Positions 1 to 28,299 of a stretch of DNA of 64,000 nt are shown piece by piece. Each line of letters starts with the position of its first letter. The first letter of the stretch is position 1. The DNA is from Tetramitus jugosus (Eukaryota; Protista; Heterolobosea), in NCBI GenBank assembly GCA_937625935.1, contig OW569351.1:434001-498000 (forward strand). The letters are read 5' to 3'. The position numbers and the translations under genes were made by a program. The notes below the pieces were generated by a model that saw nothing but the letters and a program-made list of their open reading frames with translations, searched no databases and was not told the origin of the DNA.

Positions 1-1
1 A

Positions 2-1585
2 GATGATGATATTGATCAGTTAAAAATGTTATGTGAGGAGTTAGATCGAACAAGATGGCTTCTGGAGGAAGACATAAGAGCATTTCAACAGGAGGCAAAG
101 AGTTCAGATCAGAGAGCTTCTGTTCTACATAGACAAAATGAAGAGCTCAAGAGACATTCTTCTGAACGAAATATGCAGATCGAAAAACTTCAAGCCTCAA
201 TTTCTGATTTGGACTCAAAAATTGATCAGTTGTCCAGCCAACTCGATGACAGTGAGATTAAATGTGCTCGCATTCAAGATTCTCACGACAATTTAGTAGC
301 AGAGAATGAAGAATACAAAAGGAATTCTCATGACTATCAAATCAAGCTTGAGAGGCAGATACAACAGATAAAGGACGGAGAAAGACAAATTGCTCAACTT
401 AAACACACAATTTCTCATTTGGAAGAACAGCATGAGTACATTAGCCAAGAAAACCGCCTCAACAAAGACGAAATTCACAATGTGTCGGATGATATGAAAC
501 GATTGAAAGAGGAGAACCAGTATCTGCATAGTCAAATTGCAAAAGTGTCTGCAGAGATTGAAGCTTCCAAGAAGCAGTGGGAGAACTCTGTCGCTGAAGG
601 AATAGATTTGAAGCATATCATATCAGCCAAAGACGAAGAGCTCGATCAACTGGTATCCTCATATCGGGAGATGAGTTCAGAATACAACAAAACCAAGGAT
701 AGTGTCTCTATTCTCGAGAGGGAGTGTTCTGATCTCAAACTTAAACTTAATCACAAAGACCAGGAGTTGCAGCATCTCGCAAATCGATTGCAAGAGATGG
801 AAGAGAGAGAACATCAGATGATTGTAGATTTAAATTCCTTCCATCACCAGAACGAGTTGCTATCAAACCAAAATGTATTTTATTCTGAACAAGGAAAAGA
901 GATCGAACAAGAGAAGGAAAATTTGATGCACGAAATCTCTCATCTGAAACACATGAACATTGAGACCGAAAAACTATTGGCTGAAGCTAAAACCGAATTG
1001 ATTCAAAAGAGGTTAGACTTAGAACATGTGACAGGTTTATTAACTGATCTAGAAGGTCAAAAATCGAAGATAGAGGACGAAAATAGACAGGAAAAGGGCC
1101 ATATCTTTGATATGGAGAAAAGAATGTCAGAACTGAGTGTTCAACTCCTATGTTCAACAACAGCCGAGAAGGAGAATAAGATGTTAATACAACAATTAAC
1201 TCAGAGACTGAGTGAACTAGAACAAACAAATGAAAGCTTGTCAATACAAGTCAAGAAGAATCGAACAATGGAGTTGCAGTTGCAGGAAAAAGCCATCCAA
1301 CTCGAAAACTCGAGGATAAAAGTGGAGGACTTGAACCAAAAGATTGAACAGCATATCGAATCTCATTTCAAACTATCCAAAGATATGGAAGCAATGAAAG
1401 CTAGTTTAATTCAAGCAGATGAACAAATTGACCAACTCCATCAAGAACTGAGCACTGAAAAATCAAGCAAAGATAGTTTGTTGCATGAGATTCAGGACCT
1501 TAAAGATGAATCGAAGCAACTCAAAACAATGTTGTCTGCAATGAGACAAGACAACCAACGACTTCAAGATTTGCTGCTCGAATAA
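2..1585 (+). CDS. Long coiled-coil protein, C-terminal part; probable Cep135/Bld10 (centriole/basal-body cartwheel) homologue, 5'-truncated by window edge
   Basis: Frame is open from position 2 to TAA at 1585 with a continuous heptad pattern. The segment DDMKRLKEENQ...E...E...ISAKDEE..QLV fits in register the Cep135 C-terminal pattern I recall (DDLATMARENQ...LMAAKEKENQDLL). Confidence 0.6.
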   Translation, partial: DDDIDQLKMLCEELDRTRWLLEEDIRAFQQEAKSSDQRASVLHRQNEELKRHSSERNMQIEKLQASISDLDSKIDQLSSQLDDSEIKCARIQDSHDNLVAENEEYKRNSHDYQIKLERQIQQIKDGERQIAQLKHTISHLEEQHEYISQENRLNKDEIHNVSDDMKRLKEENQYLHSQIAKVSAEIEASKKQWENSVAEGIDLKHIISAKDEELDQLVSSYREMSSEYNKTKDSVSILERECSDLKLKLNHKDQELQHLANRLQEMEEREHQMIVDLNSFHHQNELLSNQNVFYSEQGKEIEQEKENLMHEISHLKHMNIETEKLLAEAKTELIQKRLDLEHVTGLLTDLEGQKSKIEDENRQEKGHIFDMEKRMSELSVQLLCSTTAEKENKMLIQQLTQRLSELEQTNESLSIQVKKNRTMELQLQEKAIQLENSRIKVEDLNQKIEQHIESHFKLSKDMEAMKASLIQADEQIDQLHQELSTEKSSKDSLLHEIQDLKDESKQLKTMLSAMRQDNQRLQDLLLE

Positions 1586-26088: not shown

Positions 26089-27450
26089 ATGATGATTTCT
26101 GATGAAGCTGAAGAGCACCAACAGCTCTCCACCCCTACAACTACCACTGCCACAGATTACGATGATACCTATCATCACCATCACCATCACCATCACCAAC
26201 AACAAGAAGAAGAACAAGTAGTTCACACAGAACAGAACAACATGACTTCTTCTTCTTATGATACGAGTCATGATGTCAATGACTTGATTGCTCAATTCCC
26301 AACCACCACCACCACCACCACTACTGACAATCATTATCACAATCATCACAATGATGACGATGATGACAAATTGGATCATTTCAGAGATGAACCACTTCAT
26401 CATTATGATGATGAACCATTCCAACAAGAACAACAACCACAACCATCCTATGAGAGTTGTAGTAGTAGCACTTTTCCATCAAGTAGTACTACTACAACGA
26501 CTGCTGTACCACCACCTCTTCCATCTCATCTCAAAATCAACAAGCAACAATCAGCTGTTTTTCCTCCCATTCCATCCAATTTATTGTCTCTTCAACAACA
26601 ACAACAAAAGCAACAACAAGTGTTACCCTTGTATTCCATTCAAAAAATATCAAACAACACTGGTTTAATCATACGATTCTATCAAATCAATGCTTCATTA
26701 CAGCTCAACTTGTATCATCCCTATGCTAGAATTGTGATGCAAAATGAGAGTACTGTTGGTGGTGGTGGTCTTTTTCAACAACCATCATCGAATGCGAGTG
26801 TTAATGGTGCTAATGGTGCTAGTGGTGATAATGACGATGAAAGTGATGAGAGTACATGTTCATTGTTGCAAAGTATTTGTGCAACGAGAATGAATCAAGA
26901 AGTGGTGATTGCATTCGCACATCCAAACACTGAACAAATGAGATTTGAAACAGTTGTCGTTCCATCTTCTAAACAGACAGGACTAGGAGTATCTACTATG
27001 TCTCTGTTTGTGAGATCGTTTGCATTGGTATGTGCCGAGTCACATGTTCAAATTTTGAAGATGAATGATGACAATAGCAATAATAATGAAGAGTGTCAAA
27101 TTGATTTCTCCATGAGTGGTCTCAAGAATCAATTCTATCGATTATCAGTAACTGGTGTTGGTGGTGTTAGTAATGATGCAAGTGTCGTGTTGGCTGTACC
27201 TGGTTCTCTGTACACTAAGATTCTTTGCTCTTCTCCATTGGCGGCCACAAGTCCATCTGCACAAGATGCACAAGGCAATATGGATGCATGGATTGTTCGA
27301 TCAGATCGATTGATTGCATTCGAATCGACAGTGATCGTATCCAGCGTGAGTGACAGTGGTAGTCGTACTGATCGACTTGTGAGTCCAGCAAGTGAGAGTT
27401 GTCCATTGGTGAGATTGAGTGGCAAGGGAAGAGTCTATCTATCCATTTAA
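26089..27450 (+). CDS. AIM24/TRAP-like domain protein with low-complexity His/Thr/Gln N-terminus
   Basis: The C-terminal half has AIM24-like segments (FYRLSVTGVG..VVLAVPGSL, WIVRSDRLIAFESTV, LVRLSGKGRVYLSI). Confidence 0.7.
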   Translation: MMISDEAEEHQQLSTPTTTTATDYDDTYHHHHHHHHQQQEEEQVVHTEQNNMTSSSYDTSHDVNDLIAQFPTTTTTTTTDNHYHNHHNDDDDDKLDHFRDEPLHHYDDEPFQQEQQPQPSYESCSSSTFPSSSTTTTTAVPPPLPSHLKINKQQSAVFPPIPSNLLSLQQQQQKQQQVLPLYSIQKISNNTGLIIRFYQINASLQLNLYHPYARIVMQNESTVGGGGLFQQPSSNASVNGANGASGDNDDESDESTCSLLQSICATRMNQEVVIAFAHPNTEQMRFETVVVPSSKQTGLGVSTMSLFVRSFALVCAESHVQILKMNDDNSNNNEECQIDFSMSGLKNQFYRLSVTGVGGVSNDASVVLAVPGSLYTKILCSSPLAATSPSAQDAQGNMDAWIVRSDRLIAFESTVIVSSVSDSGSRTDRLVSPASESCPLVRLSGKGRVYLSI

Positions 27451-27580
27451 GGTGGCGGTCTACTGTCCATCAAGCCATAATAAAAACATTATGATTTCCC
27501 GATAAGACACCTTAACGCTCCTACATAATCGGGACTTACATAGCTGCTTGATGGAGTGAGCCTTGGAGGTGTTCCACCAT
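27447..27580 (-). ncRNA. Structured RNA, candidate Fanzor omega-RNA scaffold
   Basis: Perfect stems at 27466-75/27546-55 (10 bp), 27497-503/27528-34 (7 bp) and 27476-81/27488-93 (6 bp). An 8-bp loop-to-end pseudoknot pairs 27508-15 with 27447-54. Confidence 0.6.
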
Positions 27581-27761
27581 TTTGATTAATTCTTTTGCGA
27601 CCTTTTTCTTCCTCTTGAAGGCATCGGGACGTGACTGTCCATCCATTTCTGTTCACAATTTAGCTATCCCAATTCAGTCTCTTCACCTTCGGATTGCAAT
27701 AAAAATTCAAACAAAAATCATTCTATACGACGAGCCCTATTTATACGAAGGAGTTGGTACC
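27451..27761 (-). mobile_element. 311-bp non-autonomous element flanked by TTAA; candidate Fanzor/TnpB-derived mini-element
   Basis: Boundaries TTAA(27447-50)|GGT...ACC|TTAA(27762-65). Minus-strand peptide remnants IVNR and MDGQSRPDAFKR. TATACGA direct repeats near one end and a structured RNA at the other. Confidence 0.6.
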
Positions 27762-27867
27762 TTAAAAAATCGCAATTTACAAGTCATATAATAATTGGTG
27801 GTTTTGAGTTGGGGTAGATGTTCGCTTTATTGTACAAGAAATGTGTGTCCACATTCTTTAGGGGAGG

Positions 27868-28299
27868 CTATTTGTGCCACACATATGCTGTATGGTAGTG
27901 TTGGTCACCAAAAGACCTGGTTTCAGATTCAACCAGTCCAAGTTTGCTGTAGAATCCACGTGCGCTCTCAACAGACCACACAATCAGATTCTGGGGCTGA
28001 TACTTTTCCATTACGTCCTTCCAGACTGCATCCCACAACGCACGACCAACTCCTGCTCCTTGATACTGTTTCTTTACGAACATGTTGTGTATTTCATACT
28101 CATAGAAAACTCCATCAGCTTCTTTGTGTACCGGAATCACTTTCCCTCCACGTGCCCAAGCTATAATCTGATTGTCTGATGCTTCAATGACATGGAATAC
28201 GAAATCTGGGCTAGCAAAACGAGGACGCCAGTTTAATAATCTGCCGCTTAACTCCTCTTCTATGAATGCTGCCAGAACTACTCCGCAAATTGGACGCTT
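27868..28299 (-). pseudogene. GNAT N-acetyltransferase, N-terminus missing (5'-truncated or unrecognised first exon)
   Basis: Motif A EIHNMFVKKQYQGAGVGRAL and motif B ARGFYSKLG. The frame stays open and GNAT-like up to 28299 but has no ATG upstream of motif A before a TAA at 28300-28302. Confidence 0.6.

Follow-up and report, generated by a model that had tools for sequence, protein, structure and literature searches.

A 311-bp segment in the genome of the soil amoeba Tetramitus jugosus lies between two TTAA tetranucleotides directly behind a host gene, and raises the question of what it is, how it arose, and whether it still acts as a unit of its own. It occupies positions 27451-27761 of the window (the whole stretch of 64,000 nt that was analysed), and a check of the sequence bears out the flanking TTAAs at 27447-27450 and 27762-27765. 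The initial annotation had read it as an internally deleted Fanzor transposon with both ends and its guide scaffold preserved, derived from an autonomous Fanzor family with a TTAA target-adjacent motif (TAM).

A deletion derivative at the end of a host gene

A DNA search of the assembly (26.35 Mb, 56 contigs) with the segment gave 66 matches, many of them 92-99% identical over its last 211 bp, and in long copies the remaining parts of the query match 0.4 and 2.4 kb further on. The matches include longer, TTAA-flanked Fanzor copies and are not chance, and a family alignment with a full-length parent confirms the proposed internal deletion: the window copy arose by deletion from subfamily A of a young family of non-autonomous terminal inverted repeat (TIR) transposons. 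Relative to the parent it keeps positions 1-62 (minus 8 bp of the left TIR), 2061-2113, and 2482-2692. What remains is 51 bp from the left end, an internal 53-bp piece of the ORF, and the final 211 bp, which include the predicted omega-RNA. Its features, from the left to the right end of the element, are as follows.

27766, minus strand: T that with the left TTAA forms the predicted TAM; A or T in 21/22 family insertions
27762..27765, no strand: left TTAA target-site duplication (TSD), from the sequence
27711..27761, minus strand: left-end remnant, a TIR without 8 of its 13 bp, and two subterminal TCGTATA repeats
27742-27748 and 27724-27730: the subterminal repeats (TATACGA on the plus strand), a pair common to A and B left ends
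27658..27710, minus strand: 53-bp island of the Fanzor ORF, NFYCNPKVKRLNWDS, parent positions 2061-2113, overlooked in the initial annotation
27536..27657, minus strand: final 40 codons of the Fanzor1 ORF with its stop, behind a 368-bp deletion
27447..27515, minus strand: predicted omega-RNA core, 69 nt, from conserved terminal pairing and fold z-scores
27451..27463, plus strand: intact right TIR, 13 bp, type A, same as in full-length copies
27447..27450, no strand: right TTAA duplication, its TAA being the stop of the upstream host ORF
27432..27446, minus strand: predicted guide, ~15 nt of host flank, from Fanzor1 architecture (PMC10432273)

In its alignment with parent positions 5-62 the left remnant lacks 8 bp and has 1 bp in excess, and the idea that both ends were kept therefore holds for the right TIR and fails for the left. 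A 1998-bp deletion, joined at a TTGA microhomology, precedes the 53-bp island, and the 368-bp deletion that follows it took out the zinc finger and the NRD motif and left a scrambled joint. The minus-strand tail MDGQSRPDAFKRKKK ending at 27536 is present as had been described, and the two TATACGA repeats noticed at the same time are the subterminal repeats of subfamilies A and B. The adjacent IVNR had been taken for a remnant of the RuvC-III NRD motif, an identification that we reject: the parent has LVTHNRD at element positions 2439-2450, a part that the 368-bp deletion took out, and IVNR is an off-frame reading across the deletion junction. The last 40 codons are part of a 3′ segment that is ~99% identical across divergent ORFs. 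With the island and these codons as its only coding remains, the window copy lacks an intact nuclease ORF; it is unable to make protein, its left TIR is damaged, its whole predicted omega-RNA end is kept, and it is probably immobile.

The host ORF (26089-27450, 453 codons) is ended by the TTAA at 27447-27450, so the left-hand TTAA of the plus strand does supply its stop codon; the AIM24-like identity given to this gene is weak, with a match (E 0.015) below the cut-off. An empty allele would have the same stop, and the insertion thus leaves the 453-codon host protein unchanged; the predicted guide matches the empty allele at the host-ORF end. A host ORF of 100 or more codons takes its stop from the TAA within the TTAA at 7/42 element ends, versus 8/318 TTAA sites of the window (p 0.0006), a coincidence that probably reflects survival at harmless sites in a gene-dense genome. 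A GNAT acetyltransferase fragment (window 27868-28140, minus strand) lies on the same strand as the mini-element and points towards it, and transcription reading through from this fragment could cover the predicted omega-RNA.

Alleles of the window copy

None of the other copies found in the DNA search of the whole assembly has the junctions of the window copy, and as a single copy with these junctions it is not an amplified MITE in this assembly. A left TIR short by 8 bp and junctions unique in the assembly likewise place it outside a ghost or MITE class. A contig from a groundwater metagenome, an independent sample, covers 27670-27891 without a gap, so that both the left junction and the TIR deletion are genuine, and we reject an assembly artefact because this outside contig has both. 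The empty allele that had been anticipated is found in two outside samples by match coordinates: element-free contigs that pass from 27450 directly to 27796 occur in the same groundwater run and in a soil RNA run. In run X12, from another isolate, the right junction is present (window 26992-27475) and no contigs lie over 27712-27825; this isolate perhaps carries a third allele.

The parent encodes a Fanzor1 protein

The parent copy (G000:C33:223080-225771) is 2692 bp long, with TTAA on both sides, 13-bp TIRs (GGTGGCGGTCTAC), and one 642-codon ORF (G000:C33:223754-225679); full-length, TTAA-flanked members of the family span 2.7-4.6 kb. Longer copies with a RuvC and zinc-finger ORF had been predicted from the mini-element, and the genome indeed holds 19 full-length, stop-free Fanzor1 ORFs at 66-100% identity. 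The RuvC triad D378, E541, and D592 is conserved in the parent ORF and its relatives, as is a C4 zinc finger (C548/C551/C580/C585), with E541 about six residues before the finger and D592 as the D of NRD. The parent ORF matches the Pfam Cas12f1-like TNB profile (E 7.9e-10), and a PDB sequence search returned SpuFz1 as the sole match (E 4e-14). Its AlphaFold model (pLDDT 90.4) is closest to SpuFz in a fold search (TM 0.70, E 5.5e-24), with SpuFz, PpFz, and GtFz at TM 0.61-0.70, a mimivirus Fanzor2 at 0.25, and TnpB at 0.23. By every feature testable (triad, zinc finger, sequence, size, and predicted fold) the parent ORF is a Fanzor1, and with dN/dS values of 0.09-0.28 for the pairs where these are computable, the Fanzor ORFs are under purifying selection.

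Relatives elsewhere are four metagenomic proteins with 61-76% identity, and all others fall below ~35% over long stretches. Two of the metagenomic homologues retain the right TIR GGTGGCGGT and TTAA. Two others (L051:2437-4521 and L052:1631-3862, 62-63% identity) have a common short 3′ end without these TIRs or TTAA, which indicates that the clade also occurs with other ends; no transposase lies beside the homologues at these two loci. No relatives were found in viral contigs at the sensitivity of that search, and a viral origin was rejected on this basis.

Three end types, mosaic ORFs, and host cargo

The family has three end types (A, B, and C), each with TTAA followed by GG..CC. Sequence comparison among copies shows that the ORF interiors are mosaics, 57-80% identical, yet the last 280-340 nt are ~99% identical, and almost every intact ORF has in front of it a 126-bp segment that is missing from the window copy. 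A Vps35 fragment belongs to the B and C elements and lies beside ~20 elements as against one intact host gene, and Vps35 fragments fill much of the 5′ parts of C copies. Subfamily B has a second cargo ORF (L046:1009-1773 and L045:919-1383, both minus strand), for which the CCCH zinc-finger match is weak (E 0.003) and in which F-box-like and chromodomain-like stretches can be made out by eye. One A-ended element (L043, G000:C34:437609-441689) has a B/C-type block including Vps35 pieces inserted before its Fanzor gene, and a deletion within the predicted RNA stem. A 2.2-kb element with C-type ends (G000:C32:2808-4989) encodes a Fanzor that shares only 39-44% identity with the A protein, and we conclude that the end types are older than the current burst.

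A putative transposase moving the family

The A and B copies examined in full encode a Fanzor and cargo only, with no transposase. The suggestion of an uncharacterised autonomous Fanzor family is thus right as to the Fanzor and unsupported as to autonomy, since these A and B parents are themselves non-autonomous. Searches with PF13843, PF20700, PF10551, and the TIR pattern revealed no element combining family ends with a transposase. The piggyBac-type profile DDE_Tnp_1_7 (PF13843) has 12 genomic matches, none bracketed by family ends, though such an enzyme might work in trans, and the six MULE matches (PF10551) all lie away from TIR sites; PF20700 gave no match, and its control was also blank. 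Metagenome matches to the left end were too short. TIR matches without a nearby Fanzor occur at G000:C25:365140, C11:254181, C47:119538, C8:617477, C22:240592, C32:442476, and C47:28099, and some of these may be chance.

Kolobok elements, known from Naegleria, are recognised by a TTAA TSD and RR..YY termini, in contrast to piggyBac (PMC9587614). The T. jugosus family has the same TTAA TSD, and GG..CC in all three end types, and on this end signature it is a candidate Kolobok member; the Kolobok superfamily has its own DDE transposase, with a C/DxxH signature, whereas none was found with the T. jugosus family ends. Of the two superfamilies, a 2026 review lists piggyBac and not Kolobok as a host of Fanzors (PMC13565253). 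The ends might instead belong to a piggyBac-type transposase, which would change the host superfamily and not the rest. That listing and the use of TTAA by piggyBac speak for this assignment (PMC13565253), as do several DDE_Tnp_1_7 ORFs in the genome, two in identical pairs, but none of these ORFs lies between family ends and the GG..CC termini obey the published Kolobok rule (PMC9587614), so that we think a piggyBac origin of the ends rather unlikely. The paired ORFs, which have identical scores (G000:C18:38735 with C39:393561, and C18:150749 with C30:266267), were possibly mobile recently.

A predicted omega-RNA at the right end

In the predicted 69-nt core, an internal UUAAGGUG pairs with the terminal CACCUUAA, TSD included, around an AU-rich hairpin; the 69 nt are the core only, and the 5′ end of the RNA may lie upstream. 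Pairing of internal UUAAGG with terminal CCUUAA, over 6-10 contiguous bp, is possible in 16/16 distinct right ends that retain the internal TTAAGG, including those of homologues at 61-76% protein identity; one copy is without the internal motif. Because this pairing involves CCUUAA, the TSD would be part of the predicted scaffold, an arrangement already described for Fanzor1. Since the terminal stem does not vary, it offers conservation without covariation support (the nested stem was examined), and shuffle z-scores are -1.9 to -2.3 for the window copy and -2.9 and -5.9 for homologues. The predicted end has no match in Rfam, and a bacterial promoter scan was blank. Together we infer a putative omega-RNA that would run through the right TIR and TSD into a variable flank guide.

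A predicted five-nucleotide TAM and duplicated guide stretches

A or T stands immediately before the left TTAA in all 13 A/B insertions and 8/9 C insertions (21/22 in all), versus 58% of the TTAA sites in the window (p 1e-4). The flanks are asymmetric, with C or G beside TTAA in 1/22 left flanks versus 11/29 right flanks (p 0.007), and the base after the right TTAA is G in 10/29. These statistics favour a predicted TAM of WTTAA (5 nt) over the TTAA alone that the initial annotation had put forward; an orientation-biased transposase is an alternative source of the flank bias. In Spu-1, conserved bases upstream of the left end are part of the TAM (PMC10432273). A filled site still presents TTAA and guide at its right end, but C precedes that TTAA, and with a WTTAA TAM empty alleles would be cut and filled ones spared.

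Three copies without a left TIR (on contigs C52, C48, and C2) start with TTAA plus the first 11, 9, and 9 nt, respectively, of their own right flank. The rough chance probability of three exact TTAA-plus-guide duplications is 2e-8; A or T precedes the TTAA in 3/3, and 2/3 are joined at a 3-nt microhomology. For right-flank sequence to end up on the left side of the element, an empty allele must have been broken inside the stretch that matches the guide, and its repair from a filled allele must have begun on the right and stopped early. Fanzor cleavage with abortive homing predicts such scars, and breaks from transposase excision sit at TTAA and would not put right-flank bases on the left. LINE retroposition as a source of these 13-15 bp duplications was rejected, the ends being precise TIRs with no poly(A). 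To the left of the C2 copy lies the beginning of a host ORF that is at least 249 codons long, and three B elements carry the first 38 codons of this ORF and a near copy of the duplication, from which they appear to be descended from the C2 locus. About six other truncated copies show no guide duplication in the DNA examined. The window copy has no duplication of its own guide, and its TTAA flanks are clean; its origin therefore cannot be tied specifically to Fanzor.

Origin of the window copy and spread of the family

The best explanation overall, and in our view a probable one, is that the window copy is a deletion derivative left by incomplete repair in a family that moves in trans and whose Fanzor1 homes into empty alleles reading W-TTAA-guide. 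From the sequence patterns we infer omega-RNA expression, the TAM, cleavage, homing, mobilisation in trans, and the origin of the window copy by incomplete repair. The family would be mobilised by a cut-and-paste DDE transposase, with ends that fit Kolobok. The Fanzor1 of intact copies would load an omega-RNA that crosses the right TIR and the TSD and reaches into the flank, and the resulting RNP would cut empty alleles and spare the filled allele with its C before the right TTAA. Repair of the break by copying from the filled allele would constitute homing; incomplete copying with template jumps at microhomologies would yield internally deleted copies like that in the window, copying from the right side only would place TTAA and 9-11 nt of guide before a 5′-truncated element, and mosaic ORFs, exchanged ends, and captured pieces of host sequence would result from jumps to other copies or host DNA. 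The window copy itself would most likely be a dead-end product, contributing at most a guide RNA supplied in trans.

The 9-11 nt footprints fall short of the 14-21 nt at which other Fanzor1 proteins have been measured to cut, which calls for the assumption that ends were trimmed, and the deletions in the window copy could equally follow transposase excision or in-place decay. We advance a broader proposal only tentatively: a Kolobok-type family in a diploid amoeba may use Fanzor1 homing, with a TAM one base beyond the TSD telling empty from filled sites and abortive homing leaving scars, and the same repair may shuffle nucleases on a shared omega-RNA end and capture host genes, the mini-element being a product that may donate a guide without protein.

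A transposase acting in trans might also spread the family alone, with the mini-element arising by gap repair after excision or by deletion in place, the duplications as local repair accidents, and the flank bias as the transposase's own. Cut-and-paste elements that lack a Fanzor, such as Ac/Ds and P, typically show internal deletions at microhomologies; the clean TTAA flanks of the window copy agree with this account, and the isolate that has the right junction without the left part of the mini-element would fit in-place decay of a longer allele. Against this account, three exact TTAA-plus-guide duplications far exceed what chance would produce (rough p 2e-8), the flank bias expected of a dimeric transposase is a symmetric one, and the Fanzor ORFs are under purifying selection, all of which makes decay without Fanzor activity unlikely. 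It is more improbable still, and in our view very unlikely, that the mini-element is a maintained "ghost" or MITE-like element, at once a functional guide donor and a mobile unit like the ghost Spu-1 loci. Its predicted scaffold is intact, the same allele occurs in an independent sample, and SpuFz1 ghost omega-RNAs work in assays (PMC10432273), but a single copy in the assembly has these junctions, its left TIR is damaged, and the 126-bp segment before nearly all intact ORFs is missing, whereas the Spu ghosts, at 134 loci, have been amplified as a class and bear TIRs of their own (PMC10432273).

Comparison with known Fanzor systems

Spu-1 of Spizellomyces punctatus, which encodes SpuFz1 (PMC10432273), likewise has a ~640-aa Fanzor1 ORF between TIRs with no transposase, many near-identical copies, and ORF-less derivatives that keep the omega-RNA end. 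It has 30-bp inverted repeats, whereas the T. jugosus family has a TTAA duplication and 13-bp GG..CC TIRs; the two Fanzor1 proteins are ~18% identical in a structural alignment. Unlike Spu-1, the T. jugosus family has three end types, host cargo, and mosaic ORFs, and unlike the amplified class of Spu ghosts, the window copy is a single deletion product. Judged from sequence, the family appears to work like Spu-1. GtFz1 of Guillardia theta is also a Fanzor1 with TTAA in its TAM and a fold match (TM 0.61), but its loci are reported without inverted repeats and it has N at the third catalytic position, where the T. jugosus family has D592 and clear TIRs. NlovFz2 of Naegleria lovaniensis comes from a heterolobosean host too, but is a Fanzor2 with a CCG TAM and loci reported without inverted repeats, whereas the T. 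jugosus protein is a Fanzor1.

The Fanzor1-bearing Helitron2 elements CRe-1/2/3 of Chlamydomonas (PMC3627910) share 5′-truncated copies, intact 3′ ends, and variable duplications just after the target tetranucleotide. These duplications were interpreted at the time as one-ended rolling-circle transposition (PMC3627910). CRe-1/2/3 have Helitron ends, a TTTT target, and 7-19 bp duplications, whereas the T. jugosus family is a TIR element with a TSD, to which rolling-circle transposition is therefore not applicable.

The window copy by itself is a relic, of value as a pointer and a polymorphic test site, and the weight rests on the family-level evidence. With 19 intact Fanzor1 ORFs of several sequence types on one shared predicted RNA end, the family would extend Fanzor1 by a heterolobosean clade and bring in Kolobok as a candidate for a further host superfamily. 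Fanzor homing can be tested directly in it, as the host is culturable, insertions are polymorphic, the TAM prediction is specific, and the genome holds scars that match abortive homing. Cleavage of the empty site with restorative homing has been shown for bacterial TnpB and IscB, and not for Fanzor according to a 2026 review (PMC13565253). If true of the T. jugosus family, Fanzor1 homing would be a case of a Fanzor cutting empty sites and copying its element back, as in those bacterial systems, in a eukaryote.
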